From Guillardia theta CCMP2712 (lineage: Eukaryota; Protista; Cryptophyta), in contig NW_005434574.1 of the NCBI RefSeq assembly GCF_000315625.1, positions 1-42,196 of the forward strand: a stretch of DNA of 42,196 nt, in the 5' to 3' direction. The number at the start of each line of letters is the position of its first letter. The stretch's first letter is position 1. A model generated the notes under the pieces. The model saw nothing but the letters and a program-made list of their open reading frames with translations. It had not been told where the DNA came from and ran no database searches. A program made the translations under genes and the position numbers. This document shows, piece after piece, positions 4,601 to 33,938 of this stretch.

Positions 4601-7600
4601 GGGAGGTGGAGACAGCGGAGGAGTGCCTGCAGGCGGCGTTGCGGAAGGCGCCCAAGGACGTGGACGCTCTGTGCGCATACGCGGCTCTGATGGAGAGAGA
4701 GTTCGAGGACACGGAAGGAGCGGAGAGGATGTACAGGAAGGCTCTGTCAGCGTGCTCGGGAGGAGACAGGAGGAGGAGAGTGAGGGTGCTGTGCCGGTAC
4801 GCGGGGCTGCTGGCGTCGGTGAAGCAGGACTACAAGCGAGCAGAAGAGCTTGTGGAGGAGGCGCTGGCGATCGACCCGTCGGTCAAGGGAGGAGTGAAGT
4901 TCCTGGAGATGGTTCGCAGTAAGCAGCTGGTGGGACGAGCGTTGCCCCCCAGCCTGAGCTCGCACGTCTCACTACCTCAAGGAGGAGCAGCAGGAGCAGG
5001 AGGGGAGGGAGAGGTCGATCTGGATGCTATCATCGAGTGGTTCCAATCCGCTTGCTCGTTGGAGTGCGAGCAGGCAAAGTCGCGATGGGGCAGAACAGAG
5101 GAGGAGGAGGCGAAGGAGGCGATAAGGCGTATAGAGTTGTATGCCAGCCAAGCTCTGGAGAGGATCAAAGCTGTCGACAAGGTCACATGCTCTCTCCCTC
5201 CTCCTCTCCCCTCCTCTCCTCTCCTCTCCTCTCCCCTCCCGTCGCCTCCCCTGCACTGCACCGCACTGCTCTGCTCTGCTCTGCTCTGCTCTCCTAATCT
5301 GGCTGAGCAGGATGTGAGAGTTCGTATCGAGGAACTCAAGGAGACATGCCGAGCGGGTAAGGGAGGAGGAGGAGGAGGAGGAGGAGGAGGAGGAGGAGGA
5401 GGGAGTGAGCTAATCTTCTTGCAGTTGACAAGATGAGACAAGAAAGGAAGGAGGAAGAGAGGAGAGAAGAGGAGAGGAGACGTGAGAGGAAGGAGGAGGA
5501 GAGGAGAGAAGAGGAGAGGAGACGGGAATGGAGGCAGGAGGAGAGGAGGGAAGAGGAGAGAAGGCAAGAGGAGAAGAAGACTTCGAATCCGTTCTTGTCA
5601 TCTCCGAGGATCAATCAAACGGATCACTCGACGGGTCTTGGCAGTCTCTTTGGCTTCAACTTGAACCCGTCAGCAGCAGCAGGAGCAGGAGCGGCAGCAG
5701 CAGCAGGAGCAGGAGCAGGAGCGGCAGCAGCAGCAGCAGGAGGATCGAGAGGCACCGCCGGCTTGTTCCCCATGCCAGACAAGGCTCGTGTGGAGGAGGC
5801 AGCGGCTGCTCCTGCTCAAGGTGGGCATCTTGTTTACAGCTCGATGGATGACGAAAGCCCGCAGGATTCTTCTTCTCCTCCTCTGGTCAACCTCCTCCTG
5901 CTCCTCCGTCCTTCTCTTTCTCCTCCTCGTCTGTCCAACAGGGAGCGCCGCTGCTTGTACAGGAGGGCTTCTGGGAGGAGGAGGGAGGAGAAGGAAACCC
6001 TGCCAACTGCGCTCCTCTCCTGAACCGGAACAACTTCTTCCTGAAAGATCCGTTTGTGTCTGGTGTGGTGGAGATCGGAGCAGAGAGGAAGAGGTACTCG
6101 ATCTAATCTGCTCTCCTCCCTCCTCCCTCCTCCCTCCTCCCTCCTCCCTCCTCCCTCCCTCCCACCTCTCCTCCCACCTCTCCTCCCTCGTTTCTCCTCC
6201 ACTTACACCTTCTCCTTGCTTTCCTTCCAAGCTTCTCCCCTTGACTTCCTACTTCATTACTCTCCTCCCTCTCCTCTCCATACATCCATTGCTCCCTCTC
6301 GCTCCCTCTCGCTCTCTCGCTCCCTCATCTGACTTCCCTCTTCCTCAGTGTTCGAAGCTCCTCGGAGGCTCTCAATGCTGCGAGCATGGCGCGTGTGAGG
6401 ACGTGGGTGGAGATCTCGGGAGGGTCGCAACTGAAGGTAGCGGAGAAGAGGAGGGAGGAGATAGCGGGTGAAGGGAAGGAGGAAGGGAGAGGAGGAGTGA
6501 GAGGAGGAAGGGTAGAGGAGGAGAGGGGCAGGAGGCGGGAGGCAGAGAAGGAGGCAGGGAGGAAGGAAGAGGAAGAAGAAGAGGAGAGAGGAGGGGAGGT
6601 TCATTGACGTGAGTGCTTTCAGTCGCTGCCACAACCTCAAGCTCTTCCTGAAGGAACTCGAATCCTTCAGGCAGATGCAGGTGAATAGAGGGGAGGAGCA
6701 CCCAGGGGAGGGGAGGGGAGGAGGAGGGAAAGGGAGGAGAGGAAAAGGGAGGAGGAAGAGCAGGAGCACGAGGAACACGACCACGAGAAGGAGGTGGAGA
6801 GACTTTGGTGTGAAACTGACGGTTATGACAGAAAGGACGTTCAAGAACCCTGCCTTCCGGGAGAGTATGGTGCGGATACTCAGCAAGGTAAGACACGAAG
6901 ACATGAAGATGGAGGAGGAGGGGGGAGCAAGGGGAATGAAGACGAGAGTGGGTAAGGAGGGAGAGGAGGGAGACAGACAGCAGGTAGGGGGAGCAGGAAG
7001 GAGGGGAAGCTTTACAACGATGGGGAGGAGGATGGTGACGTGAGGTGCAGGTGGCGGACGGAGACTACCATCAGGGGTTGGGCTACGTAGCAAGCTTCCT
7101 GCACCTCTACCTCTCCGAGGAGGAGGTCGCGCGTGTCCTCGTCGCTATGGGGAGAAGCGAGAAACATGCCAAGGGATACTGGAAGGCGAAACCAGAAGCC
7201 TTCGCGCGAGACGCCATGGTGTTTGAACGCCTGCTTGAGGTTACTAGACTCCCTCCGTCCCTCCGTCCCTCCGTCCCTCCGTCCCTCCTCCGTCCCTCCT
7301 TTCCCCTGACTCGCTCGCCTGCAGCAAAGGGACCCTGAGATCGCTGCTCGCCTTCGATCAGCTGGAGTTGTACCGGAGGCGTACGCGCAGAAGTGGTTCG
7401 TGGTGAGTAGAGGGTCTAGAGCTCTCGAGCCGCAGCTAACGGGCGCGGCAGGGGCTGTGCGTGCACGTACTTCCCTTCAGGTACCTGATGGACCTCATGG
7501 AGCGATACTTGCAGCGGGGATGGACGTACATCCTCCGCTTCGGGCTGGCCCTCGTGGAGCAGCTGCGGGGGAAGATGAAGCAGCTGGCGCCGCACGACTC

Positions 7601-15921: not shown

Positions 15922-18900
15922 ACGGCTACTCAGCTGGGCTATCTGGTGAGCATGTCGCGCCATAGCACGTAGTTCTTGGATCCCTCCTGGTACTGCTCGT
16001 AGAGCGACAGCAGATGTACCTGCACCTCACTCGTCAACGCCCCCCCCCCTCCCCCTCACAAACAGCAGGACAGCAGCTGGGGGCGGGCAGCGTCTTACCT
16101 GGAGCTCGCAGATGTGGGTCTCAGCCATCTTGAGGTCCCACTCGCTGACCGGCAGGAACTTACACTGCTCCTCCTCGAAGACCCAGCCCACCTCCAGGTT
16201 GATCGACAGGTTCCGGTACGCGTTCTCCGGCTCGTAGTAGCGGCTCGAGTCCGAGAACCTGTTCTTGACGCGCACGATGCGGAACAAGGGCTGACTTGAA
16301 GGAGACTGCTGCTGCTGCTGCTGCTGCTGCTTCCCTCCTCTCCGCTCCTGCTTGGTGCCGATGACGGAGATGCTCTCGAGGAACGCCAGCAGCTGCTCCA
16401 CCTGCTCCAGCTGCTCCACCACCACAGTCGCTCGCACAAGGTCGGTGAGGCAGGCAGAGTCTCTCCCATAGATCCTGACGCACTTCTGGATGGCTCGCTC
16501 GGGCTGCTTGATGGGCCCTCGCACGAAGATGAGGTTGTCCCACGTGTCCACCCTGACCTCTCCCCTCAGAGAGGCGCGCTTTAGGAAGCGAAGCTCGGGC
16601 CTGAGCTGCTGCTCGCCGTGAGAGACGGCTGGGTGGGAGGGGTTGAGGTCATGGCAGAGGTTCTTCTTGAGCAGGTCGGCCAAGAACTCGTGGAAGTGAT
16701 CGTTGACGCTCGAGGCTTGCCAGAAGAGCTGACCGAAGTTGTTGGTCTGCTGGCGGACCTTCCCCTTGAAGGAGAACCTCCCTACAGGCTCCAGGAAGAG
16801 ACTCCGAAACCTCCAGCTCCTCGTCATGGTCGCAGCAGCGAAGCAGGCCCGATACTCCCGGTCGACCGTCTGCTCGATCCTCTCGGTCCTCGCGATGAGC
16901 CTCGTCACTATCGCCTGGTTGGCTGGCACTTGCAGCAGACGAGACCACTGCTCGGCATACTTCTTCTTGTCGCCATTGACTCTCCTCGACGCTTTCTTCT
17001 TGATGCTCCACTTGAGAGTCGTGCAAGTGAAGTACGCAAACCAGAACACAAGACCTGAAGCCAAGTTGTAGAACGCTCTCAGCATCGAAGCTTGAGCAAA
17101 GTGTACTGGCGCCAGCACAAGGCACTGCTGCACCCCAACAAGCGCCATGAACTTCACGATCAGGTCCTGACGGTTGACAAACAGGTAGGCCATGACAAGC
17201 ATGAAGGGAGCGAGGGAAAAGTACTCGAACAGAAACCCCCGCGTCAGGCTCTTGTGCAGCGTCCATGGCTCGGTCTTGTCATGCCAGCCCCCCAGCAGCT
17301 GGACTATCTCCGTGAGGATCTGACAGAAGGTTTGGAAGATCTGAGCCTTCAAGTTCAAGACAGTCGTGAGGTAAGCCTGGTGGGGGGAGTTGTACCTGGC
17401 GTCATACACTGCCTTGAGCCACAAGGCTCCCTTGATCACACCACAGGGCCAGTGTAGGAAGACTATACACCATGCTGGTGTGGATCTGTTAGTAATGCCG
17501 TACCATGAGTGCATGGGCTCTGACATGGACCTGAATGTCTGAGATGTGCAAAGAAGTCCGTAGAAACAGAACAAGGTTTGGAAGTAAACTTTCGACAAGA
17601 TGATCTCTGTGGCGCTCAAGCTCGACCAGGCGGTGAAGACAGGGACCTTGGAGTCGTTGAACTTCTCTAGCCTGTAGTTCATGTCCTTGGCTCGCATGTC
17701 TCCTCTCAGATGCTGCACCGCCAGCTGCAGCTCGATCCGCTTCCCCACAGACCCTAGACTCTCCAGCGAGCACGTGAGGCTCTCGCAGTCCTGCTGGTCC
17801 AGTTTTGCCACATGCTCGAGCGAGTAGAGCCCGTTCTTGGAGAAGACGCGGGCAAAGCAGATCAAGCCGTTCTCCCGCATCCACTGCAGCAGCTCGGCTC
17901 CCTGAGGCCTCGAGAGCTGAAGCTGCTGGATGCATTTCTTGGTGACGATGTTGCTCAGCAGCTTCGACACCTTCATCATAAGCTCCCTCTCGTCTCCTGT
18001 CGCATGCGCCTTCTTGAACTGCCCGATCTGCTCCTCCAGCAGCTTGTTGCAGTCGCTCAGCTCTTTCGCCCACAGCACCAGCATCTCCACGTACTGCAAG
18101 ACACTCGCGATCTCTCGCTGGCACGAGAAGTCACCGGCGTGGACGCTCTTCTCGGGGATCACTCCGGGCAGGTGCTTGTGCTTCTTGGCGTAGGCGACGA
18201 CCTCGTGCAAGGAGGGCTTCATGAAGTCTTCTTGGAACACAAAGTCAGGCCAGCCGTTGGACAGCCCGTGCAGCTTCACGTAGGAGAAGTAGTCATAGTC
18301 GAGGTTGATCGCCGGCAAGATCTTCTCCCCTCCAGCCCCCCTGCCGTCCCTCCTCGTGCCGTTGCCGGTCGCTTGCTCCGAGCTCCAGGGTGACGCGGGC
18401 AGGTGCGGGAAGGGCGTCCAGGTCGAGTCTGAGGCGGTCTTGAGGTTCTGCTCTCGCAAGAGCTTGGCCTTGAGCGCGAACCACGTGTCCTCTGAGCTCA
18501 CAGCTGCCTCCGAGCTGGGCGTGGGGTTGGCGCTTTCACAGGGGCTGTCGTTGTCGCAGAGGCTCTGATGAGCCTGGCTCTCTGCTTGCGTCGCGCTCGG
18601 CTCGGCAGCAGGAAGCCAGAGGCTGCAGCGGGGCTGCGAGTCGTCGGGCGGGCAGTAGCTGACGGAGAGGATGGGGTCGAGGTGCCAGGAGGAGCTCTGA
18701 TCGAGAGCTTCCTCCTCGTGCATCATCGAGGCTGAAGCAGCCAGACACGCGAAGAGATCGCTATCCGGCGACGAGTAGGAGCCTCCAGACTCTGCCACGA
18801 AGGGCGAGCACAAGGCCCCGTCCAGACAGTCATCGGGTGACTCGCTCTGACTGCTCCGCTCGCGCAGCATCTTGTCGTGGAGATCCTTCCAGTACTTGTG

Positions 18901-19882
18901 AAAGGCACCGTTGGAGTGCGACTCGACCGCGTTCCTCGACGCTCGGTTGTCTACCGTGATGGGGTTGGGCAGCCTCGGACCGCAGAGCTTGGGAAGGCCC
19001 TCGGCGAGCTTGTCGCCGGAGAGAGGACAGACCTTGCAGAGGATCACCTTCTTCCCGCACTGGCATTGCCCGATCTGACTGAAGTGCTCCATCGCGTGGC
19101 TGATCTCCCGGTCGCTGCTTCGCCCGAGCATCAGCTTGCAGATCGCAGGCGTGAGGACGTTGGACGAGCGCCATTGCGAAGGGCTGTGCTTGCACTTGTT
19201 GTCGTTGCTCCTGCTCGACGGCTTTCCTGGCATGCTCGTCGCCGCTGAAGCTGCAGGAGCGACCTAGGAGGAGGGAGCGACCTGCTTCCAGAGCTGCCGA
19301 GATGACCTGCAGAGCAGGAGCGTCAGGGGGCGGAGGGTCTCGAGGCGACGGTGGCAGCAGAGCATGAGAATGCGGCAAGGGGGGAGCGGAGCGGGGAAAG
19401 GAATGAGCAGGGGAGGCAGAATGGAGGGGAGATGGCGTGTGGGAGTGCTGGCCATCCTTCACAAGAGCAAATCAGGCACGAGCTGCAGGACCGCAAGGAG
19501 GGGTGCACAGGCTGAGCTGGGAAGATGGCGGGTGGGAGGGAGGAAGTAAGAATGTGGGGAGGAGAGGAGGATAGGGAGAGAAGAGGCCTCAAGGCATCCC
19601 AGATCGTAGGGAATGATCCAGCAACCAGCCTGACCGCATCTAGGCTTTCAGGGAGCGAGCGCTGAGAGGGTATGATGGCTCAAACAGACGGAAAAGAAAC
19701 GTCAAGAGGAGCCAGTAACAGCTACAAAGCTCAAGCGCTCAGACGATGATGATGGCAGAAGGAAACACGAGGGACCTCAGGTAAGATGCAGCATCACATA
19801 CAGCAGTAGCGAGAAACATGCTAGCTGGCCGAGGGAGAGAATGGAGAAAGAAAAGCAGAAACACAGGTAGGTGAAGCGCGAG
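15922..19882 (-). repeat. Inverted segmental duplication, left arm
   Basis: Reverse complement matches 21347-25296 apart from scattered substitutions and an 11-bp indel in the 5' non-coding part. Confidence 0.95.
15939..19233 (-). CDS. Zinc finger / S74-like tail-fibre module / SAM / multi-TM / RelA-SpoT-like nucleotidyltransferase protein, copy A
   Basis: Long ORF plus intron 16020-16098 and last exon VHLLSLYEQYQEGSKNYVLWRDMLTR*. Motifs GPIKQPERAIQK, LTDLVRATVV, RVKNRF, AYRNLSIN, ICELQVH; SAM-like ELLQWMRENGL..FARVF.KNGLYSLE. Confidence 0.8.
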
Positions 19883-19938
19883 CGAGGTGGAGGGTAAGGA
19901 GCAGGAGGTGTTTGTGATGTTGGAGAAGGATGAGGACT

Positions 19939-19939
<1 letters not shown>

Positions 19940-20010
<71 letters not shown>
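19940..20010. repeat. (GCAGGA)n microsatellite in the spacer of the inverted duplication
   Basis: Perfect hexamer run. Confidence 0.9.
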
Positions 20011-21346
20011 GCTTTACACTACTCTTGTTCATTCCGGGGAACGCACTTATCTTTACTACACGTTCTTTTACTTAACTTTCGTCTTATCTTCACCTATAAT
20101 GATCCCCGGAACTTCGGAACCCCCGGCCGCCGGCCCGTCACGTCCGGGTCACCAGGCCAAGTCAGGCTCTCATCCGATGATCGTATGCCAGCCGTCACGG
20201 TGCCAGCCTGTCAGTTGGCGCCGAGTTAACAAACTTGAAAACTCTCCCAGTGTAAAACCACTGAGACGACGGACCCGGGCCTACTCCGCGGTTTCAACCA
20301 GGCGGCAATGTAGCACAGAGACCAACTTGAAGAGACCTTCCTAGCCGTCTTGCTAAGACGATCTTCTCATGTCCGATCTGGATGCTTGGGTTTCAAGTTT
20401 GGCACATCCTAGCGTACAGTCTATCTCTCATGTGCGGGGCCTCAGTCACGAGTCCCGACGGTAGTTCCGAAGGAGTCCGATCCGAGGCTCCGGACTTGCC
20501 AGCCTTGAAGCGGCTTTCAGTGACTCCGAAAGTTAACTGAGTTAACCCGGCCCTTTGAGGCGCGGCGGCCTCAGCCGTCGGCACAGACCGTCGGACGACG
20601 GCGCCGAGTACTAAATGAGTAGTACCGCCGGAGTCACAGGTACGGTAGGACTCCGGAAGTTCCCGAGTCCCGGCCGCCCGGCCCGGCCCGGCCCGGGATC
20701 ATCGGATCCGGGACCGTCAGACTGAGACTGAGATCCGAGACGATTCCGAGTATCGGGCCGGTGCCGCGGCCGGGCGCCGAGCAGCGGCCCGGGGCGGGCC
20801 GGGCAACGGCCGGGCCCGGCAGGCGCCGCTCGGGAGTCAGCTGCAGACGTTGACTCAAGTTTAGCGAAGTTAACCTACTAGGGTCCGTTTGCTGGTCATT
20901 TCTTGAATTATCCAAGGGGTTGCATCTCTGTCATATGTTCATGTACAATATGAACCATTTGATCAATCAATGTAATATTGACATTATATATTGAAAATTC
21001 AGAGAATATTTTGAGAGAAATTTTCATAATGGTCAAAATTTATCTCTCATTTGACCCCCTATGAAAATCTCCTCACGAAAGATCCACCCCACCCCTACAG
21101 CCTTCAGGTCCGCCTTGCCAAGAAGTTTCTCACCCACATCACTTGGATTGAATACCACCCCATCTTTTGACTGTATAAAGCAGGGTCCAGGAGGTAAGGG
21201 GTGGTACCGTAGACTGCTGGTTCATGGCGCAGCAGCCGCCTTGCTAGGAAAGGAAGCGACTACAGCTCCAGCAGCTGCTTCCTGCCCCAAACCCTCTCCA
21301 GCACCTTCCTGTCCCTCATCCTCATCCTCCTCTTCCTACTCCTGCT

Positions 21347-24300
21347 CTCACGCTTCACCTACCTGTGTTTCTGCTTTTCTTTCTCCATTCTCTCCCTCGG
21401 CCAGCTAGCATGTTTCTCGCTGCTGCTGTGTGTGATGCTGCATCTTACCTGAGGTCCCTCGTGTTTCCTTCTGCCATCATCATCGTCTGAGCGCTTGAGC
21501 TTTGTAGCTGTTACTGGCTCCTCTTGACGTTTCTTTTCCGTCTGTTTGAGCCATCATACCCTCTCAGCGCTCGCTCCCTGAAAGCCTAGATGCGGTCAGG
21601 CTGGCTGCTGGATCATTCCCTACGATCTGGGATGCCTTGAGGCCTCTTCTCTCCCTATCCTCCTCTCCTCCCCACATTCTTACTTCCTCCCTCCCACCCG
21701 CCATCTTCCCAGCTCAGCCTGTTGCGGTCCTGCAGCTCGTGCCTGATTTGCTCTTGTGAAGGATGGCCAGCACTCCCACACGCCATCTCCCCTCCATTCT
21801 GCCTCCCCTGCTCATTCCTTTCCCCGCTCCGCTCCCCCCTTGCCGCATTCTCATGCTCTGCTGCCACCGTCGCCTCGAGACCCTCCGCCCCCTGACGCTC
21901 CTGCTCTGCAGGTCATCTCGGCAGCTCTGGAAGCAGGTCGCTCCCTCCTCCTAGGTCGCTCCTGCAGCTTCAGTGGCGATGAGCATGCCAGGAAAGCCGT
22001 CGAGCAGGAGCAACGACAACAAGTGCAAGCACAGCCCTTCGCAATGGCGCTCGTCCAACGTCCTCACGCCTGCGATCTGCAAGCTGATGCTCGGTCGAAG
22101 CAGCGACCGCGAGATCAGCCACGCGATGGAGCACTTCAGTCAGATCGGGCAATGCCAGTGCGGGAAGAAGGTGATCCTCTGCAAGGTCTGTCCTCTCTCC
22201 GGCGACAAGCTCGCCGAGGGCCTTCCCAAGCTCTGCGGTCAGAGGCTGCCCAACCCCATCACGGTAGACAACCGAGCGTCGAGGAACGCGGTCGAGTCGC
22301 ACTCCAACGGTGCCTTCCACAAGTACTGGAAGGATCTCCACGACAAGATGCTGCGCGAGCGGAGCAGTCAGAGCGAGTCACCCGATGACTGTCTGGACGG
22401 GGCCTTGTGCTCGCCCTTCGTGGCAGAGTCTGGAGGCTCCTACTCGTCGCCGGATAGCGATCTCTTCGCGTGTCTGGCTGCTTCAGCCTCGATGATGCAC
22501 GAGGAGGAAGCTCTCGATCAGAGCTCCTCCTGGCACCTCGACCCCATCCCCTCCGTCAGCTACTGCCCGCCCGACGACTCGCAGCCCCGCTGCAGCCTCT
22601 GGCTTCCTGCTGCCGAGCCGAGCGCGACGCAAGCAGAGAGCCAGGCTCATCAGAGCCTCTGCGACAACGACAGCCCCTGTGAAAGCGCCAACCCCACGCC
22701 CAGCTCGGAGGCAGCTGTGAGCTCAGAGGACACGTGGTTCGCGCTCAAGGCCAAGCTCTTGCGAGAGCAGAACCTTAAGACCGCCTCAGACTCGACCTGG
22801 ACGCCCTTCCCGCACCTGCCCGCGTCACCCTGGAGCTCGGAGCAAGCGACCGGCAACGGCACGAGGAGGGACGGCAGGGGGGCTGGAGGGGAGAAGATCT
22901 TGCCGGCGATCAACCTCGACTATGACTACTTCTCCTACGTGAAGCTGCACGGGCTGTCCAACGGCTGGCCTGACTTTGTGTTCCAAGAAGACTTCATGAA
23001 GCCCTCCTTGCACGAGGTCGTCGCCTACGCCAAGAAGCACAAGCACCTGCCCGGAGTGATCCCCGAGAAGAGCGTCCACGCCGGTGACTTCTCGTGCCAG
23101 CGAGAGATCGCGAGTGTCTTGCAGTACGTGGAGATGCTGGTGCTGTGGGCGAAAGAGCTGAGCGACTGCAACAAGCTGCTGGAGGAGCAGATCGGGCAGT
23201 TCAAGAAGGCGCATGCGACAGGAGACGAGAGGGAGCTTATGATGAAGGTGTCGAAGCTGCTGAGCAACATCGTCACCAAGAAATGCATCCAGCAGCTTCA
23301 GCTCTCGAGGCCTCAGGGAGCCGAGCTGCTGCAGTGGATGCGGGAGAACGGCTTGATCTGCTTTGCCCGCGTCTTCTCCAAGAACGGGCTCTACTCGCTC
23401 GAGCATGTGGCAAAACTGGACCAGCAGGACTGCGAGAGCCTCACGTGCTCGCTGGAGAGTCTAGGGTCTGTGGGGAAGCGGATCGAGCTGCAGCTGGCGG
23501 TGCAGCATCTGAGAGGAGACATGCGAGCCAAGGACATGAACTACAGGCTAGAGAAGTTCAACGACTCCAAGGTCCCTGTCTTCACCGCCTGGTCGAGCTT
23601 GAGCGCCACAGAGATCATCTTGTCGAAAGTTTACTTCCAAACCTTGTTCTGTTTCTACGGACTTCTTTGCACATCTCAGACATTCAGGTCCATGTCAGAG
23701 CCCATGCACTCATGGTACGGCATTACTAACAGATCCACACCAGCATGGTGTATAGTCTTCCTACACTGGCCCTGTGGTGTGATCAAGGGAGCCTTGTGGC
23801 TCAAGGCAGTGTATGACGCCAGGTACAACTCCCCCCACCAGGCTTACCTCACGACTGTCTTGAACTTGAAGGCTCAGATCTTCCAAACCTTCTGTCAGAT
23901 CCTCACGGAGATAGTCCAGCTGCTGGGGGGCTGGCATGACAAGACCGAGCCATGGACGCTGCACAAGAGCCTGACGCGGGGGTTTCTGTTCGAGTACTTC
24001 TCCCTCGCTCCCTTCATGCTTGTCATGGCCTACCTGTTTGTCAACCGTCAGGACCTGATCGTGAAGTTCATGGCGCTTCTTGGGGTGCAGCAGTGCCTTG
24101 TGCTGGCGCCAGTGCACCTTGCTCAAGCTTCGATGCTGAGAGCGTTCTACAACTTGGCTTCAGGTCTTGTGTTCTGGTTTGCGTACTTCACTTGCACGAC
24201 TCTCAAGTGGAGCATCAAGAAGAAAGCGTCGAGGAGAGTCAATGGCGACAAGAAGAAGTATGCCGAGCAGTGGTCTCGTCTGCTGCAAGTGCCAGCCAAC

Positions 24301-25296
24301 CAGGCGATAGTGACGAGGCTCATCGCGAGGACCGAGAGGATCGAGCAGACGGTCGACCGGGAGTATCGGGCCTGCTTCGCTGCTGCGACCATGACGAGGA
24401 GCTGGAGGTTTCGGAGTCTCTTCCTGGAGCCTGTAGGGAGGTTCTCCTTCAAGGGGAAGGTCCGCCAGCAGACCAACAACTTCGGTCAGCTCTTCTGGCA
24501 AGCCTCGAGTGTCAACGATCACTTCCACGAGTTCTTGGCCGACCTGCTCAAGAAGAACCTCTGCCATGACCTCAACCCCTCCCACCCAGCCGTCTCTCAC
24601 GGCGAGCAGCAGCTCAGGCCCGAGCTTCGCTTCCTACAGCGCGCCTCTCTGAGGGGAGAGGTCAGGGTGGACACGTGGGACAACCTCATCTTCGTGCGAG
24701 GGCCCATCAAGCAGCCCGAGCGAGCCATCCAGAAGTGCGTCAGGATCTATGGGAGAGACTCTGCCTGCCTCACCGACCTCGTGCGAGCGACTGTGGTGGT
24801 GGAGCAGCTGGAGCAGGTGGAGCAGCTGCTGGCGTTCCTCGAGAGCATCTCCGTCATCGGCACCAAGCAGGAGCGGAGAGGAGGGAAGCAGCAGCAGCAG
24901 CAGCAGCAGCAGTCTCCTTCAAGTCAGCCCTTGTTCCGCATCGTGCGCGTCAAGAACAGGTTCTCGGACTCGAGCCGCTACTACGAGCCGGAGAACGCGT
25001 ACCGGAACCTGTCGATCAACCTGGAGGTGGGCTGGGTCTTCGAGGAGGAGCAGTGTAAGTTCCTGCCGGTCAGCGAGTGGGACCTCAAGATGGCTGAGAC
25101 CCACATCTGCGAGCTCCAGGTAAGACGCTGCCCGCCCCCAGCTGCTGTCCTGCTGCTTGTGAGGGGGAGGGGGGGGAGCGTTGACGAGTGAGGTGCAGGT
25201 ACATCTGCTGTCGCTCTACGAGCAGTACCAGGAGGGATCCAAGAACTACGTGCTATGGCGCGACATGCTCACCAGATAGCCCAGCTGAGTAGCCGT
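21347..25296 (+). repeat. Inverted segmental duplication, right arm
   Basis: Near-identical to the reverse complement of 15922-19882. Identity stops 17 bp after the stop codon (GAGTAGCCGT). Confidence 0.95.
21985..25279 (+). CDS. Zinc finger / S74-like / SAM / multi-TM / RelA-SpoT-like nucleotidyltransferase protein, copy B
   Basis: Intact ORF with intron 25120-25198 and stop at 25277-25279. Five amino-acid differences from copy A; extra in-frame ATG at 21979. Confidence 0.8.
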
Positions 25297-26350
25297 AACG
25301 ATTGGACCTTGTGATGCTTGTGCGTGTATGCTGAAGTTTTATCAGCTCACAAAGTTAAGCTCAGCAAACTGAGATACAGTTGTATTGGCTACTGCGGCAT
25401 CACAAAGTCCGAAACTGCCCGCGGTCGCTGCGGCCCAGTAAGGCTGCCACTGGGCCACGTTACAAGTGTGCTGCTACCCAGCCTGCGCTCAGCCTCGGAG
25501 CCCGCCGGGGCTGCCAGTCGATCATGGCGGACTCTCACCGGCCCCGCTGGCCATGCCGCATGTTCACCCGGGGCCGGCGGCGTCTTTTCTCTTCTCGCCG
25601 TATCAGTGGCCGTCAGGGTCAAGCCTCCTTTACTCTCCTGGTTGTGAACGGTCCTCGTACTATACTAACTCTGCTTAACTTTGAGTAAAAATAGAAGGCT
25701 TGGAGCCTAGGCTGCTAGTCACACCGCGCGGCACCGTAGTATCAAGTTCAGCCGCGGTCAGTGAGGTCACTGACGGTCACTGAGCCCGCAGGGACCGGCC
25801 GGGCCCCGCCGGTTGAGCCGGTCGCCACCAAAGTAGTACGGTTAAGTAGTAGTGCTGACGGTAATACTCTTTATTGACTGAAAAAGAAGGGCAAACCGGA
25901 GCAAACAAAGGAGGGAAAGAATAGAGGCCACAAACCCGCCTCAATAAAATACTAGGAAAGGAAGGAGGCAGAAAACCGCTGCAAGCGACGGCACTGCCGC
26001 ATGCCGTGACGACAAGCAGGGGAACAAGGATCAGGACAAAGAGCAGAAGCGCAAGGCTCCTGCGAGGAGGACGGCAAGACCCATACGAGAGCGATACTGC
26101 CGAAACAGGCGAGCACGCAAACGATGAAAGCCAGGTTCCGAAGTTCCAGGCTGTGTCCCTGCTAGCACCCGCCCGGGCCCGCCCGGCTGAAACGTAGAAC
26201 CCCACTAGTTCTATGATTCAATGATTACCAAGTAATTCTGTCTTTTATGTAATTATATTCAATTAGCTGAGGCAGGCTTGAATTTTCTATTCGCTTCAAA
26301 AATAAATAATTTTAAAGAGCAATTGACAAAAGGCGAATCACGAGGGCGGC

Positions 26351-28192
26351 ATGGCGACCAAGAAAGGATCGCAGGCGTTGCGCATGTACGTGTCGAAGAT
26401 ACGACAGGCGGTGAGGGAGGGGAAGGTAGAAGATGGTCTTGCTCTCCTGCGCGAGATGCTCTCCCTCGGTCATCAGCCTCCTTCCTTCGTCTTCTCTCAT
26501 GTCCTCTACCTCCTTGAGACTCAGGGGCCTTCGAGGTTCGGGGATGTTCAGGAGCTCATGAAGGTCATGAAGGAGCAGAACGTGCAGCCGGAGGAAGCGT
26601 TCTTCACTACCCTCATTCGCTTCCACCTGGCCATGGGAAACCCTTCGAGCGCGAGGGAGGTGCTGGGGGAGATGATGAAGGCTGAAAATACTCTGCCGAA
26701 GCGAAGGACGTTCCTCCCAGTGCTGGAGGCCGTCTGCGAGGGCGGGAACGAGGAGGAGGCGTTCAAGATGCTGACACTGATGCGCGAACTTGGCATCGTC
26801 ATGGGGGAGTCCGAGTTCATCTACCTGGTCAAGCTCTGCTCGTTCGATTACGCTCGCCATCGCATGCCAGAGGTTCTGGAGGAGATGAGGCAGGTGCTCT
26901 ACGGCATCCAGCAGCCTCTGGCGGAGGAGCTGAGAAATTGGTTTGAGAAGACGCACAACGTGAGCACGGGACGCATCACTGAGTTCGGCATGTGCTCCGT
27001 GTGCCAGGCGCGCCTTGGCATCGTGGATGTCAAGGAGGAGCAGGTTGCACGGATGTGCGAGGATTTAGAGAAGATGATTCAGTTGGATCTTGACGGCAAG
27101 AGCAACAGCCATGAGCTCGCACTCCAGGACAACGTCTTCCGCACGGGGACGCCGCAGGGGTTGAGGGGAGGAACGCACTTCAAGACGTTCAAGGCATGGC
27201 TGGAGAAGAATGGGCCATGGGATGTGATAGTCGACGGGGCCAACGTAGGATACTACGGCCAGTCAGGGAACCAGAGGAGGGACCTACAGCTGAACTATCA
27301 TCAGATAGACCGAGTGATCCGCTCTCTGCAGAGGAGAGGACATAGCGTTCGGGTGTTGCTGATCCTGCATGCTCAGCATATCAAGAAGGCACGTCACAAT
27401 CCAGACGCGCTGAAGATGGTAGAACGGTGGTTGTCGGAAGGAATCATATACGTGACACCATCTGGTATGAACGACGACTGGTTCTGGATCTATGCTGGGC
27501 TGTGGAGCACAAGGAAGCTCAAGTCGACGCTGATCCTCTCCAACGATGGCATGCAAGATCACCATTACGCGCTGGTGGAAACCTCGAGGAAGTTCGGGGG
27601 GGAGGTGAACAGCAAGAGGATGATGGCAGACACTATCAGCTACCACAAGGAGTTCCTTAAGTGGAAGGAAAGGCACTGGGTCACCTACGAATGGTCCCGC
27701 TCCGTAGGAAGGATAGTCTTCAACTTCCCACTCCCCTACTCCACGTGTATCCAGGGCAGTCTGGCCCAGCCTTCCCCATCCTCCTCCTCCTCCTCCTCCT
27801 CCTCCAAGTTGCAGGCCCGCAAGATTGACCAGCTGATCACGTCTGCTCTCAACACAAAACTTGAGGACGTGACGTGGCATTTTCCAATCGCAACATCGAC
27901 TGAGGAAGAGTTGGAGGATGTGCCGAGGAGCAGCAAACACAAAGAACCTTCGGACCAGCTTCCTTTCTCTGTCACTAAGTCCTCGACCTGGTTATGCGCT
28001 GCTTCCAGGAGGAAATTCAGCAGCATCGCAGCCCCCTATAGACAGACCTCCTCCTCCTCCTCCTCCTCCTCCTCCTCTTCCCCTTCCCTACGTCCCTCCC
28101 TGCTCTCTCCCCTTCGTCCCCTACCCTCCTGCATCGATCGGAATTGGGCAGTCTTGAGGAGCAGCGGGAGTAGCAGGAAGATGATTATGTAA
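26351..28192 (+). CDS. PRORP: Protein-only RNase P (PPR repeats plus NYN metallonuclease)
   Basis: N-terminal PPR-like repeats (EAFFTTLIRFHLAMGNPSSAREVLGEM, RRTFLPVLEAVCEGGNEEEAFKMLTLMRELGI). Zn ligands CSVC...WHFP...WLC. NYN acidic motifs VIVDGANVG, TPSGMNDDWFW, SNDGMQDH. Termini uncertain. Confidence 0.9.
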   Translation: MATKKGSQALRMYVSKIRQAVREGKVEDGLALLREMLSLGHQPPSFVFSHVLYLLETQGPSRFGDVQELMKVMKEQNVQPEEAFFTTLIRFHLAMGNPSSAREVLGEMMKAENTLPKRRTFLPVLEAVCEGGNEEEAFKMLTLMRELGIVMGESEFIYLVKLCSFDYARHRMPEVLEEMRQVLYGIQQPLAEELRNWFEKTHNVSTGRITEFGMCSVCQARLGIVDVKEEQVARMCEDLEKMIQLDLDGKSNSHELALQDNVFRTGTPQGLRGGTHFKTFKAWLEKNGPWDVIVDGANVGYYGQSGNQRRDLQLNYHQIDRVIRSLQRRGHSVRVLLILHAQHIKKARHNPDALKMVERWLSEGIIYVTPSGMNDDWFWIYAGLWSTRKLKSTLILSNDGMQDHHYALVETSRKFGGEVNSKRMMADTISYHKEFLKWKERHWVTYEWSRSVGRIVFNFPLPYSTCIQGSLAQPSPSSSSSSSSSKLQARKIDQLITSALNTKLEDVTWHFPIATSTEEELEDVPRSSKHKEPSDQLPFSVTKSSTWLCAASRRKFSSIAAPYRQTSSSSSSSSSSSPSLRPSLLSPLRPLPSCIDRNWAVLRSSGSSRKMIM

Positions 28193-29000: not shown

Positions 29001-32000
29001 TCACTTGTCCGTCAGCGCTCGGTAGCCCTGCCAGCCGACAGGGGCAGAGCCGTCCGCCCTTCCCTCCTCCTTGATGACGTTGAGCAGAGCAAGCGTGGGG
29101 CCGTCGCTGGGGTTCTCCTGGAAGCAGGAGAGGAGGTGAATTCTGGCCTGCCGCCAGTCAGCGTTGGCGCCTCCCTCCTCCCCCAGGTAGTTCTTCATCG
29201 CCTTCCTCCACTCCTGCCGGAACTTTTGGGTGGTGGAGGGGGCGAAATACTCGAAGAACTCTTTCGTTGTCATCTCGGGATCTAGAGCATGGGAGGGTCA
29301 CATGGGAGGAGCAGAGGGAGGAGGGAGGAGGGGGACAGAGAAGGAGAACGGAAGGTAAGGGGGAGGGGCGGAGGAAGAGGAGCGGCGGTGAACGGAGGAC
29401 GGAGGGAGGAGGAGGAGGAGGAGGAGGAGGAGCGGCGGTGAACGGAGGACGGAGGGAGGGGGAGGGGGAGGAGGAGGAGGNNNNNNNNNNNNNNNNNNNN
29501 NNNNNNNNNNNNNNNNNNNNNNNNNNNNNNNNNNNNNNNNNNNNNNNNNNNNNNNNNNNNNNNNNNNNNNNNNNNNNNNNNNNNNNNNNNNNNNNNNNNN
29601 NNNNNNNNNNNNNNNNNNNNNNNNNNNNNNNNNNNNNNNNNNNNNNNNNNNNNNNNNNNNNNNNNNNNNNNNNNNNNNNNNNNNNNNNNNNNNNNNNNNN
29701 NNNNNNNNNAAACAACCTCAGGCGGAAGTTGAGAAATCAGGTTGCTGCCAGCTGACAGCTCGTTGAGTTTCTTGCAGGAGGCGATGGAGGAGGGGATCCT
29801 TGCGATCTTGTTGTTGCCGACCGACAATGAAGACAAATTGCCTTCGTCGTCGCACATCAGAGAGGAGCAAGAGGAGGATAGGGAGGAGAGAGAAGACAAA
29901 CAGAAGGAGAGGAGACTGACCTTGACCAGTGAGGTCAGGGAGGATTGAGAGCTGATTCTTGCTCAGCTGAAGGTCCGCGAGCTCTACGAGTCAATGTCAA
30001 ACTTGAGTTGAGCGAGACTTGACGACCGTTGAGAGCAGTCAAACTCGGCAACTCAGTTATCTTGTTCCAGAACAAGGCTAGCCGGGTCAGGCTGCTCAAC
30101 CCTGACAGGTCTGGAACCTGAGAGGGGCATGAGAGGTAAGCAAGGAACGCAGGATTAGGAGGAGGAGGACGAAGACACTTGGAGGAGGAGGAGGAGGAGG
30201 AGGAGGAGGAGGAGGAGGAGGAGGAGGAGGAGGAGGAGGAGGAGAGGACGAGGAGGAGGAGGAGGAGAGGAGAGGAGGAGGAGGAGGAGGAGGAGGAGGA
30301 GAGGAGAGGAGAGGAGGAGGAGGAGGAGGAGGAGGAGGAGGAGGAGGAGGGGAAGCGAAGAGTAGTAGTAGTAGTAGTAGTAGGAGGAGGAGGAGGAGGG
30401 CAAGGAGTAGGAGCAGTAGTAGTAGTAGTAGGAGGAGGAGGAGGAGGGCAAGGAGTAGGAGCAGGAGGGAAGGAGGGAAGGAGGGAAGGAGGGAACCTGA
30501 GCTGTTTGCTGCACTGAAGCTCGAGGATAATCCTCACGTAACTCTTCAGTGCTGAATCAGCGACATCGTGAACAGCCACTTGCCCCTTGGGCTTCCAAAC
30601 CAGCTGGAGAGCATACGTCAGAATCCCTCCCTCCCCCCTCTCCCCTCCCCCTTCCCCCGTCCCTCCTCCCTCCTCCCTCCTCCCTCCTCCCTCCTCCCTC
30701 CTCCCTCCGTCTCTTACCAAGAACGCATCTCCAATGTTCTTGTTCGGAGCCCCGAAGTTCTCCTTGGTTGCCGTATGCACTATCCTCGCCACGTCGTTGA
30801 CGAGCTTGACGATATCAGCTCTCAGAACTTCAGTGCAGTCCGTGAAGTTTCTGATGTCGCAGAAGCCGAAGATGGCGTTCACTACTTTCCCTCCTTTTGT
30901 TGTGTCCATGTTCCCATCCTTCATGCTCGCAGAGATGATTTTTGCTCCCGCCTCTCCGAACCCGAGCTGCAGCAGGTTTCCTATCCTCACGATGGCGTTT
31001 TCGACCTCGTACGCTCTCTCCTCTTTGAGAACGTCGTGGAGGTTTCCCAGAGGATCTTTCATCAGAAGCTCCAGGGAGTGAACGATTCTTGCCATGGGTC
31101 CTGAGGAGAGCGTGAGGGAGGAGGAGGAGAGGAGGAGGGGAGGAGGGGGAGAGGAGGAGGAAGAAGAGAGGAGGAGAGGAGGAGGAGAGGAGGAGGAGAG
31201 GAGGAGGAGTGGAGGAGAAGAGGAGGAGGAGAGGAGGAGGAAGGGGATCAATTGCCACCATAACATCCTGATAATTTCTTACCGACAAGTTCTCGACGCA
31301 TTGAGGCAGAGAGAGTGAGAGCAAGAAGACAAATAATCTTGAACAACGTTGTCATTGTCAAGTACGACAAACACAACGCAAATCACCATCAAGATGCTCA
31401 GAACTGTCAGCAAGTTCCCAATCTGTCAATCACCAAGTGAGGAATACATGTACATTCAAACTCGTACAAACTCCGCCCCCCCTCCCCCCATGGCAACAGC
31501 TGATCCTAACAAACATCCATGATTAACTCACCGCAGTATCCTGAACGTCACTGAGGATAGAAACGTGCATCACTCCCGTACCGTCTCCAAGAGGTAGATC
31601 GCTGAAAGAAATTTCTGACCATGATCGTGGTCGTTGCCGATAGTTGAGGTATTCCTTGTCATTCCCATACAATACAATGTTGCTCAGTTCGAGGTATATC
31701 AGAGGCGTTCCAGTCGTTGCGTTGACATCAAGGCTCTGTTGAAAGGAAGAGAGCAGAGGAAGGAGGGAGAGGAGGGGGATACCAAGGGGGAGATGGAGGT
31801 GCGNNNNNNNNNNNNNNNNNNNNNNNNNNNNNNNNNNNNNNNNNNNNNNNNNNNNNNNNNNNNNNNNNNNNNNNNNNNNNNNNNNNNNNNNNNNNNNNNN
31901 NNNGGAGGGAGGAGGGAGGAGGGAGGAGGGAGGAGGGAGGAGGGAGGAGGGAGGAGGAAGTAGGAGGGAAGAAAGAACAGTCAGACTTGCGCATCAAGAG

Positions 32001-33938
32001 GATCAGCTGACTCACCGTGACCAGATCTTGAAGCATCGTTGCCTTCCAACCTTGCAAGCACGTCTCGTCAACCTCTGCCCCTCCTCTTCTCACGCATGGC
32101 GCCAGCGTCGCGCTGTATCCTCGCATGGCGAGGAGGAGGCACTGGGAGGGCCTAAAGGAGTAGGCGGCGGAGAGAGAGAAGGAGAGCACAAGAGTGACAC
32201 CAACTGAGATGACAACATGCATCGAGATGTACGTGTCCAGCTTCTTGGCCAGCTCGGAGACTGAGTTGTCGCCGAGCTCGTTGTCAAACTGTCCAATCCT
32301 CTTGTTCCTCAGCCTGTTGATGCGGCTCAGGAGCTGAAGGATACGAATAATTCGCGCGACTCGAGCGCCTGCGCTGGCAGCCCTACCGCTCCTGGCAAGG
32401 TCAGAGACGTTCTTGCCGATGTTGAGGATATCAATGCCAACCATGAACCAAATAACGTCGGGGAGGAGGGAGAGAAGAGAGATAAGGTCAAGCCAGAAGT
32501 AGAAGGAGGAGAGGTACTTGGGTTCCCACCGCATGCGGAGGAGGAAGTCTACGAGGAAGACGAAGAAGCATGCGAAGTTGACAGAGAAGATGGCGCGATC
32601 GAGGAAGAGAGGAGGGTTGAGGAGGATGTAGACGTCGTCCCCGCACAAGATCCACATGGTGCAGATGATGTTGAGGTAGATGACACCCTTGGACTCGAGA
32701 AAGTTCTCAATCTTCACATCTCGTTCGCTCTTTGCCTTCTTCTTCTCCTTCTCAGCGCTTGCCACATCGTCCTTCTTGCTTGACACAGCCTCCATCTCCT
32801 CCATATCATCGGAATAGACCGTCGACCAGGCCGTGTCTCGTTGCTGCTCAAACTTGCCGCTCATCCAACCATCACTCGAGTCTGTGCTGAAGCGCTTCTG
32901 CAGGCGAGGAGGAGGAGAGGACGGATCTTCGGGAGACACCTTCCTCCCCCTGACGAGAAGACTCTTGAATCTCGTCTGGAACGATGAGAGTAAGACGAGA
33001 GGGGGCGGGAGGGGGCGGAAGAGGGCGGGAGAGGAGAGGGAGAGAGAGAGAGAGAGAGAGAGGGAGGGAGAGGAAGAGGGAGAGAGAGAGGGAGAGAGAG
33101 AGGGAGAGAGAAGTGGGGGAAAAGGGAGAGCAGGAGAAAGGAGAAGGAGGGGAAAAGGCGACTAATGAAAGAGAGATGCAACAATTGAAATCGATCACCG
33201 TAGAAAGAATCAATGCTTTGTTCTGCATAATGCTCTTCGATTTGCTTATTTGGAATGCAAGCGCTTTCCTCCTGGTACCAGACAGAGCTCTCATTCCACA
33301 TCGACTAATTCTCCACCACACGGAACACACCATAGCATAGCATAGCATAGCATAGCATAGCATAGCACACCTCTCACAACCGTATACATCATCACATCAA
33401 TCTTCACAACTACAAACCTTCTCTAACAACCATGACGACACTTCATCTCTCAAGACATCATGACATCTTCCGCTCTCACGTGCTTGTCCTCTTGCTATCA
33501 CCTTTGCGCCTCTTGTGTCGCCCACCATAGCGCCCTGGTCCACCGCAACCTCGCAATCTGACTCTTGGTAAGCGCAGCAGCAGCATGGTCGCCTTCGGTG
33601 GACTCCTCTCCATCTAGCGCTGCTTCAGCATGCACGGGACTGAGCACGAGATAGCATGTCAGATCAGTTCACAATGCTCGAGAAGCTTTCTCATCATCAC
33701 ACCTGAACGCAGGTTTTCTGCTTGTTGGGATTTCAATCACGGGAGCTGTCGTCGGTGGAGGCACAATCTGCCCCACCTCAAAACTCGCATGATTGTACAA
33801 GGAATCATCTTCGACGTGATTGCACGAGTTATCTTCCTCGTACTTGTCTCCCTCTGTCTTCGGATTCAAAGATTCGTTGCGAGAGTCACGTCGCAGTGGC
33901 GGGAGAGGTTTGAGCTTCAAGGAAGTGGATTCCGGCAT
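29001..33938 (-). CDS. Class III adenylyl cyclase with N-terminal ion-channel-like (S1-S4) membrane domain, alveolate ACalpha type; incomplete in this assembly
   Basis: FYFWLDLISLLSLL, S4-like LARSGRAASAGARVARIIRILQLL, LLQLGFGEAGAKII, IFGFCDIRNFTDCTEVL, GAPNKNIGDAFL, C-terminal WQGYRALTDK*. The second half of the catalytic domain is not visible (gap 29481-29709). Start codon uncertain. Confidence 0.8.
29710..30117 (-). CDS. Three leucine-rich-repeat exons (gene fragment)
   Basis: Spliced: VPDLSGLSSLTRLALFWNKITELPSLTALNELADLQLSKNQLSILPDLTGQGNLSSLSVGNNKIARIPSSIASCKKLNELSAGSNLISQLPPEVV, i.e. LxxLxLxxNxL repeats. Confidence 0.75.
30160..30490. repeat. (GGA)n/(GTA)n low-complexity tract
   Basis: Long GGA run with two GTA-rich sub-blocks, lying between the cyclase and LRR exons. 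Confidence 0.9.

Follow-up and report, generated by a model that had tools for sequence, protein, structure and literature searches.

A Tas1-like RelA/SpoT-type synthetase domain on a predicted SAM-containing membrane protein of Guillardia theta, one of a large family

In eukaryotes, the known RelA/SpoT homologue (RSH) proteins comprise the (p)ppGpp enzymes of plastids, Mesh1, which is a hydrolase, and a small number of 'divRel' synthetases that have not been placed (2011 RSH survey, PMC3153485). According to a 2022 review, neither pGpp nor (p)ppApp has been reported from plants or algae (PMC10107265). Among the bacterial RSH synthetases, Tas1 is a secreted toxin; it carries a PAAR domain for delivery, and its cognate immunity protein is Tis1 (PMC8118318, PMC10083569). 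The surveys of Tas1/Apk1 homologues covered bacteria only (PMC10083569, PMC12691689), eukaryotes are not mentioned in the 2020 toxSAS paper, and fungal NLRs have been reported to carry RelA_SpoT as one of their N-terminal effector domains. The gene described here encodes a protein of 1071 residues, P0001, with a Tas1-like domain at its C-terminus, and lies in nuclear DNA of the cryptophyte Guillardia theta; 'the window' below denotes the whole stretch that was analysed (42,196 nucleotides). No published description of the membrane-anchored, Tas1-like algal family to which it belongs was found in the literature.

The reading preferred here, with a probability of roughly 0.6, is that P0001 is a six-helix membrane protein carrying a cytosolic Tas1-like RSH pyrophosphokinase under the control of oligomerisation. 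What is new is an expressed, non-plastid, Tas1-like RSH domain on a putative SAM membrane protein, and a very large family that is undetected by Pfam. The enzyme domain and its key codons are located as follows.

24475..25279 (interrupted by an intron), + strand: RelA/SpoT-type (RSH SYNTH) pyrophosphokinase domain, aa 831-1071, from AlphaFold2 (AF2) modelling, VIA-align, Foldseek and profiles
24709-24711, 24775-24777, 25000-25002 and 25111-25113, + strand: key codons K909, D931, Y1006 and E1043, respectively, from a residue audit

With 82 relatives as input, AF2 gave a model of aa 741-1071 with a mean predicted local distance difference test score (pLDDT) of 89.6 and a predicted template modelling score (pTM) of 0.89. 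Its best match in VIA-align is B. subtilis SAS1 (5ded), with Z 13.5 and a root-mean-square deviation (rmsd) of 2.6 Å over 153 residues, and ranks 1 to 25 are all occupied by RSH synthetases (RelQ, RelP, Rel, CapRel, SpoT, Tas1, and RelA). The Z values are 11-12 for RelQ/RelP, 10.0-10.5 for CapRel, 9.4 for Tas1, which has the highest identity (23%), and 6.7 for FaRel2; the first non-RSH fold, TdT, appears at about 7. The top PDB matches of the enzyme domain in Foldseek are RelQ, RelP, Tas1, SAS1, Rel, and FaRel2, and its matches among viral proteins are phage RelA/SpoT and Tas1-like proteins. As modelled, the C-terminal domain has the RSH synthetase fold, a Pol-beta-like nucleotidyltransferase (NTase) fold. 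It was on this fold that an earlier note on the same DNA, made from the letters alone, had let its proposal of a membrane-anchored RelA/SpoT-like enzyme stand or fall, and the fold is what the model returned.

In sequence searches of the PDB, P0001 alone gave only a sub-threshold match to Tas1 (E 0.73), in which VRGPIKQPERAIQKCVRIYGRDSACLTDLVRATVVVEQ was aligned to Tas1 279-316. A three-sequence profile matched Tas1 at 3.7e-4, and a 28-member profile of short family members matched Tas1 at 1e-8, B. subtilis RelP/YwaC at 6e-4, and S. pneumoniae RelQ at 0.014. In the RelP alignment from the latter profile, the family pattern VK-x3-R-x3-K-x2-R stands opposite RVK-x3-S-x3-K-x2-R of RelP, the catalytic Asp is aligned, and GYRdL, ElQ, and gHkrY of the family correspond to GYRSLH, EIQIRT, and EHKIY of RelP. 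Tas1 and the family share the motif variants PIK-x2-ERA-x-QK, DL-x-R, and GHK-x-Y-x2-WR; the GHKYYEDWR of Tas1 matches the C-terminal GHxRYVxWR of the family, where P0001 reads GSKNYVLWR. Judged by sequence profiles, the closest characterised relative is Tas1/Apk1. RelQ and RelP, against which the earlier note had proposed to check the domain, are matched in structure and in profile searches but do not hold the place of closest characterised relative. The loss of the canonical His (GYxSxH) and RT (ExQxRT), also claimed there, is confirmed by the motif comparison.

An alignment of 82 family sequences shows seven invariant residues, K909, R913, K917, D931, R934, E1043, and R1066, all of which are present in P0001, as are those conserved at 95-99% (R920, Y922, N991, R1007, and Q1045, the last at 99%). 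P0001 also keeps K990, R992, Y1006, H1040, C1042, and Y1062. By correspondence with known synthetases, D931 is predicted to bind Mg2+, E1043 and Q1045 to act in catalysis, K909, R913, K917, and R920 to hold the ATP phosphates, and Y1006 to stack on the acceptor base. D931 and Y1006 are the equivalents of D90 and Y128 of FaRel2, where D90G and Y128A inactivate the enzyme and the residues have been assigned to Mg2+ coordination and acceptor stacking (bioRxiv 10.1101/2021.04.30.441581). The residues of the catalytic geometry (catalytic Asp, Glu/Gln, stacking Tyr, and phosphate-binding Lys/Arg) are all in place, and the RSH domain appears catalytically complete.

The gene has two exons.

21985..25279, + strand: whole coding region of the 1071-aa protein P0001, from the open reading frame (ORF), splice sites and transcript contig L001
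21985-25119, + strand: exon 1, encoding aa 1-1045
25120-25198, + strand: intron of 79 nt, GT..AG, separating the ExQ motif from the last helix and absent from transcript L001
25199-25279, + strand: exon 2, reading VHLLSLYEQYQEGSKNYVLWRDMLTR up to the stop and including the stop codon 25277-25279

The ORF in the window runs from 21973 to 25191 (+), and the intron boundary reads ELQ/gtaag...gcag/VHLL. The start codon taken, ATG at 21985 (MPGK), is common to both copies of the gene (see below), while the other copy has ACG at the place of a further ATG upstream, at 21979. Just 5' of 21973 there is an in-frame stop, and the natural transcript contig L001 (JGI sample 3300017164, 3548 nt) is colinear with the genome across it; the N-terminus of P0001 is therefore complete. 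L001 matches 21910-25122 at 100% and 25190-25530 at 99.4%, and because it matches on both sides of the intron, transcription of the gene and the splice are confirmed. L001 and the database protein P0001 supplied the spliced product. The best database matches of the ORF are G. theta GUITHDRAFT_122765 (P0002, 96-98% identity) and the paralogue GUITHDRAFT_101652 (P0003).

Between the SAM-containing part of the protein and the enzyme lie a membrane region and a short connecting segment.

23596..24204, + strand: membrane region, aa 538-740, six predicted helices (hydropathy scan)
24205..24474, + strand: juxtamembrane helical hairpin and linker, aa 741-830 (AF2 helices 2-27 and 30-62 of the domain model, pLDDT 84-97)

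The predicted helices, hydrophobic or amphipathic, are at about aa 541-563, 587-607, 620-647, 666-686, 690-712, and 720-740. The inside flanks and loops have a net charge of about +10, with KWSIKKKASRRVNGDKKK directly after the last helix, and the three predicted outside loops, 7-23 residues long, total about +3. From hydropathy and charge we infer an N-in/C-in topology, which would place the SAM and enzyme domains both in the cytosol. The hairpin after the membrane carries a family-conserved Y759-x3-W763 motif (89-92%). No hydrophobic segment was found before aa 544 in the hydropathy scan, hence there is no signal peptide or bipartite plastid leader, and no HD hydrolase domain was found in P0001 by Pfam. 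A plastid RSH, which would need leader and HD domain, was rejected as a reading. Membrane anchoring and the lack of a plastid presequence and of an HD domain had all been proposed in the earlier note, and all are supported, the multi-helix block being a family trait. The word receptor, which it had also used, is not: predicted loops of 7-23 residues provide no ligand-binding ectodomain. Profile matches to voltage-gated sodium channels (E about 0.007-0.1) were rejected, as they fall on membrane-helix and low-complexity stretches.

The part upstream of the membrane is built of five segments.

22012..22374, + strand: Cys/His-rich module, aa 10-130, candidate Zn-binding (paralogue conservation)
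22375..22896, + strand: low-complexity Ser/Pro/Asp-rich linker, aa 131-304 (31% identity to paralogues)
22897..23199, + strand: S74-like module, aa 305-405 (GWPDFVFQxD...HLPGV...; similarity to the C-terminus of P0158)
23200..23307, + strand: long helical coiled-coil-like connector, aa 406-441 (AF2 helices 370-412 and 415-441, pLDDT 46-61)
23308..23559, + strand: SAM domain, five helices, aa 442-525 (AF2 pLDDT 60-85; Foldseek)

The AF2 model of the N-terminal 540 aa, made from 6 sequences, has a pLDDT of 41 and is usable only at aa ~440-525. In this usable part, the SAM region, the top 50 of 50 Foldseek matches in the PDB are SAM domains (EphA7, EphB2, BICC1, p73, tankyrase, and Caskin among them), with target-normalised template modelling (TM) scores of 0.69-0.83 and rmsd of ~2.0-2.3 Å; the match to EphA7 3h8m has TM 0.69 and 2.0 Å over 65 columns. 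The Foldseek E-values are weak (>=0.06) because the query was the 540-aa model. P0002, P0003, and P0050 are named 'SAM domain-containing' in UniRef, and Pfam SAM_2 matches one family member, while Pfam SAM gave no match in P0001. A SAM domain in P0001, as claimed earlier, is supported by the modelled fold. With the N-terminal 540 aa as query, the sequence search of the PDB gave only a chance-level DeoR-type match (E 0.87), and neither P0001 nor its pieces had a match in Pfam (whole ORF and five pieces), PHROGs, or NCBIfam.

The sequence features listed in the earlier note (Cys/His cluster, Ser/Pro linker, hydrophobic helices, and C-terminal motifs) were all found where it had placed them; the translation reads CQC, CKVC, and HSNGAFH, then a Ser/Pro-rich linker, and KQPERAIQK, LTDLVR, AYRNLSIN, and ELQVH. 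Six Cys and about five His of the Cys/His module, including CQC-x7-CKxC, are conserved in the paralogues, and the module is 69% identical to P0003/P0004. It has an AF2 pLDDT below 50, 7 matches in the G. theta genome and none elsewhere, and no Pfam, PDB, or usable ESM Atlas match. The earlier zinc finger stands as a candidate, in the form of a conserved Cys/His cluster that matches no recognised fold, and its conservation is confined to cryptophyte paralogues. On contig C66 (L003, G000:C66:219500-228500), two short head-to-head genes (ORFs 2693-3517, -, and 5233-6255, +) encode the Cys/His module and a 'EDMWFHTKAEILRQQNLNTAVD.SWRPFP' helix shared with P0001 aa 248-275. Their ORFs have no SAM, membrane, or enzyme part, and so the module exists also as a stand-alone protein or separate exon.

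The linker (aa 131-304) has a pLDDT of 24-39 and mostly lacks secondary structure. The S74-like module, which reads GWPDFVFQEDF..PSL.EVV.YAKKHKHLPGV... in P0001, shows 40% identity to the final 88 residues of P0158 in an alignment of 84 aa (pairwise E=9e-14). P0158 is an 889-aa bacterial-type secreted protein with a signal peptide and tail-fibre-like repeats. The module is conserved at 85-87% between paralogues, has only 4 copies in the G. theta genome, and matched no Pfam, PHROG, or NCBIfam family. The identity of P0001 to P0003 varies along the protein as follows.

Cys/His module: 69%
Linker: 31%
S74-like module: 87%
Coiled coil (helical connector): 91%
SAM domain: 87.5%
Membrane helices: 30%
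Juxtamembrane region: 43.5%
Enzyme domain: 56%

By these values, the unit of S74-like module, coiled coil, and SAM domain is the most constrained part of the protein.

The gene is far from singular, which the earlier note could not have seen. A six-frame profile search of the G. theta assembly (87 Mb) found at least 121 matches to the domain, many of them two per long ORF, and a three-sequence profile against 1.84 billion cluster representatives gave 2306 at E≤1e-3, 790 at E≤1e-10, and 102 at E≤1e-30. Members were found in G. theta, in transcriptomes of MMETSP and EukProt, and in assemblies of ENA, Logan, and JGI. Of 153 representatives, 95 have at least three hydrophobic segments, which are placed immediately upstream of each enzyme domain, and proteins with two such domains read TM-NTase-TM-NTase (TM here for transmembrane); from this placement, a membrane block followed by a Tas1-like domain is the conserved unit. 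The N-terminal additions vary: SAM is found in at least 8 G. theta loci, and among environmental members there are a protein kinase and a DZIP3-type HEPN domain. In UniRef, one G. theta family member bears the label 'RelA/SpoT domain-containing', so that part of the family is visible to automatic annotation. With the Pfam models RelA_SpoT and HD_4, only two loci were found in the genome, both canonical long RSHs (C47 and C24).

Two members may be mentioned for their architecture. The environmental protein P0098 (1443 aa; 14 near-identical sequences; ENA metagenome scaffold L004, gene 2743-7074) combines a protein kinase with the membrane and Tas1-like unit. P0050 (GUITHDRAFT_113953) has SAM, membrane helices, and the Tas1-like domain, and its N-terminus, with FHFFLSYRVSTEEE, resembles the start of a TIR domain; a TIR domain there was unsupported by Pfam and by PDB sequence search. 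Elsewhere in the genome, Tas1-like matches cluster in local arrays and inverted pairs on several contigs (examples are C30:477356-529490, C206:46645-57045, and C49:431953-454981).

The window itself contains such a pair.

15939..19233, - strand: second intact gene copy, head-to-head, with intron 16020-16098 (tblastn 99.2%, inverted repeat arms)
19497..21721, no strand: divergent intergenic region between the copies (repeat search)

Between the two arms of the inverted repeat, 15922-19496 and 21722-25296, 17 of 3575 nt are different. The outer parts of the intergenic region (19507-19882 and 21347-21722) are also inverted repeats, with a unique core of ~1464 nt. Both copies have an open frame without stops and keep the intron, which has 2 substitutions. 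In their coding sequences, 8 codons differ synonymously and 5 non-synonymously (Q86P, P189L, L699V, L712F, and Q885K), the larger number of synonymous differences indicating that both copies are under purifying selection. L001 is identical to the + copy over its repeat part (L001 7-3219). An assembly artefact was considered as the source of the duplicate and rejected, given the 17 differing positions and the 100% match of L001 to the + copy. The recent duplication proposed in the earlier note is supported. A third near-identical copy is on G. theta contig C424, and the paralogue P0003 is on C8; tandem and palindromic duplication is suggested to be the usual mode of expansion of the family.

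Two other genes of the window have recognisable products. An adjoining intronless ORF, 26351-28192 (+), 613 aa, is a protein-only RNase P (PRORP 3e-32, PPR_long 7e-21, NYN domain), and a 403-aa ORF at 31731-32939 (-) matches Pfam Ion_trans, a voltage-gated-type cation channel, at 8e-9 and is probably one exon of a larger channel gene.

If the preferred reading is right, the enzyme would take the beta-gamma pyrophosphate from ATP and place it on the ribose 3'-OH of an acceptor, which would most likely be an adenine nucleotide (AMP, ADP, or ATP), giving (p)ppApp. The SAM and enzyme domains would both face the cytosol, oligomerisation of the SAM or coiled coil at the membrane would control the activity, and the output would be either a nucleotide signal or a local to global depletion of ATP. 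A role in stress, conflict, or cell fate would fit a huge, recently duplicating family with variable N-terminal modules better than a housekeeping role. Several points weigh against this reading. Activity is putative for every member of the eukaryotic family, and the six-helix count comes from the hydropathy scan, with helix 3 amphipathic. P0001 deviates at two nearly invariant positions, with Ala at G1005 (Gly 95%) and Ser at H1059 (His 91%), and the paralogues P0003/P0004 have Leu-Lys for Tyr-Arg, by which the stacking Tyr is lost, and Tyr for R992; the P0001 subfamily may have altered or reduced activity, part of it having drifted at the active site. The only two HD_4 loci in the genome are both inside long RSHs, and there is no obvious cytosolic enzyme to degrade a signal. 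Pfam RelA_SpoT (PF04607) does not match P0001, and relatives score 13-23 bits against a cut-off of 27; this last, however, is a sensitivity limit of the PF04607 model and no evidence against homology.

As to the acceptor, the (p)ppGpp synthetases RelQ/RelP (Z 11-13.5) rank above Tas1 (Z 9.4) by structure, and an adenine nucleotide is put forward as the most likely choice. P0001 could instead be a cytosolic (p)ppGpp synthetase that pyrophosphorylates GDP/GTP as RelQ/RelP do and provides G. theta with a non-plastid, stringent-type signal. The best structural matches, RelQ/SAS1 and RelP, and the alignment of the GYR and ExQ motifs with RelP would agree with this, but in sequence the affinity is about 10^4-fold better for Tas1 than for RelP or RelQ, the family carries Tas1-specific motif variants, and neither the His of GYxSxH nor the RT of ExQxRT is present. 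A (p)ppGpp product is on balance unlikely. A pyrophosphokinase that modifies the 3'-CCA of tRNA, like CapRel, FaRel2, and PhRel2, which would block aminoacylation and halt translation when activated, is a little less probable still. It would suit a conflict or abortive-infection role, and CapRel (Z 10.0-10.5) and FaRel2 (Z 6.7) use the same Asp and Tyr; the sequence relation to the toxSAS families, however, is no closer than to Tas1, and membrane tethering seems a poorer fit for a macromolecular substrate such as tRNA.

The uneven conservation along the protein raises the question of whether the domain is an enzyme at all. It could be a catalytically dead or regulatory RSH-like domain, serving as a nucleotide sensor or scaffold in a membrane complex in which SAM and coiled coil carry the function. 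The S74-like, coiled-coil, and SAM unit is 85-91% identical between paralogues against 55-56% for the enzyme and 27-30% for the membrane helices, and the two deviations in P0001 and the missing stacking Tyr of P0003/P0004 may be taken the same way. P0001 nevertheless keeps every residue that is 100% invariant in the 82-sequence alignment, including the Mg2+ Asp and the catalytic Glu, and its two recent copies show more synonymous than non-synonymous change. A dead domain is the least probable of the three alternatives, and the Tas1-like pyrophosphokinase stays the preferred reading.

A broader reading may be offered tentatively, and is more likely to be wrong than right in its full extent: a Tas1-like (p)ppApp synthetase, in bacteria known for its action as a toxin, would have been taken up by cryptophytes and other marine protists and would there have grown into a very large family of cytosolic enzymes tethered to the membrane, the SAM members being oligomerisation-triggered, ATP-consuming or (p)ppApp-signalling effectors with an antiviral, stress, or cell-fate role, analogous to SARM1 or to bacterial abortive infection. 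If true, a (p)ppApp pathway would be described for the first time in the cytosol of a eukaryote. More generally, alarmone chemistry of the bacterial kind may take place in eukaryotes outside the plastid. Should the family be active, the question arises of whether signalling or defence in eukaryotes relies on (p)ppApp-type nucleotides or on the depletion of ATP by pyrophosphorylation, and the family would add to the cases in which the fold of a bacterial toxin has entered a multigene family of eukaryotes.

Tas1/Apk1 (PDB 6ox6), the Pseudomonas aeruginosa type VI secretion (p)ppApp toxin, is the best sequence match among all solved structures. In contrast to Tas1, P0001 is eukaryotic, intron-containing, membrane-anchored, and multidomain with SAM, has no known immunity partner, and has Ser in place of the His of GHK; a toxin delivery domain (PAAR or MuF) was not found in P0001 by Pfam, and the gene neighbours are unrelated (PRORP). 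RelQ/SAS1 and RelP/SAS2 (5ded, 2be3, 6fgk, and 6ewz) have the same fold over ~150-160 residues (Z 11-13.5, rmsd 2.5-3.5 Å) and share with the P0001 family the aligned catalytic Asp, Tyr, Glu/Gln, and phosphate-binding Lys/Arg. They are soluble, single-domain bacterial tetramers making (p)ppGpp, whereas the P0001 domain is tethered to a predicted six-helix membrane region. P0001 has Arg for Ser in K-x3-S, the Arg after the catalytic Asp two positions earlier, and a long insert with a poly-Gln run, and lacks the His of GYxSxH and the RT of ExQxRT. The long RSHs of plants and algae (Rsh1-4) belong to the same synthetase superfamily, and the G. theta loci C47 and C24 carry HD_4 and RelA_SpoT; unlike them, P0001 has no HD hydrolase, no signal or transit leader, and no TGS, ACT, or other Pfam match.

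In SARM1, a SAM oligomerisation domain is joined to a NAD+-consuming TIR enzyme. The catalytic folds are unrelated (TIR against RSH NTase), and P0001 holds no evidence for octamers or a death function. The analogy would lie in the architecture, in that both proteins join SAM to an enzyme acting on a central nucleotide, which in P0001 would possibly be the consumption of ATP.

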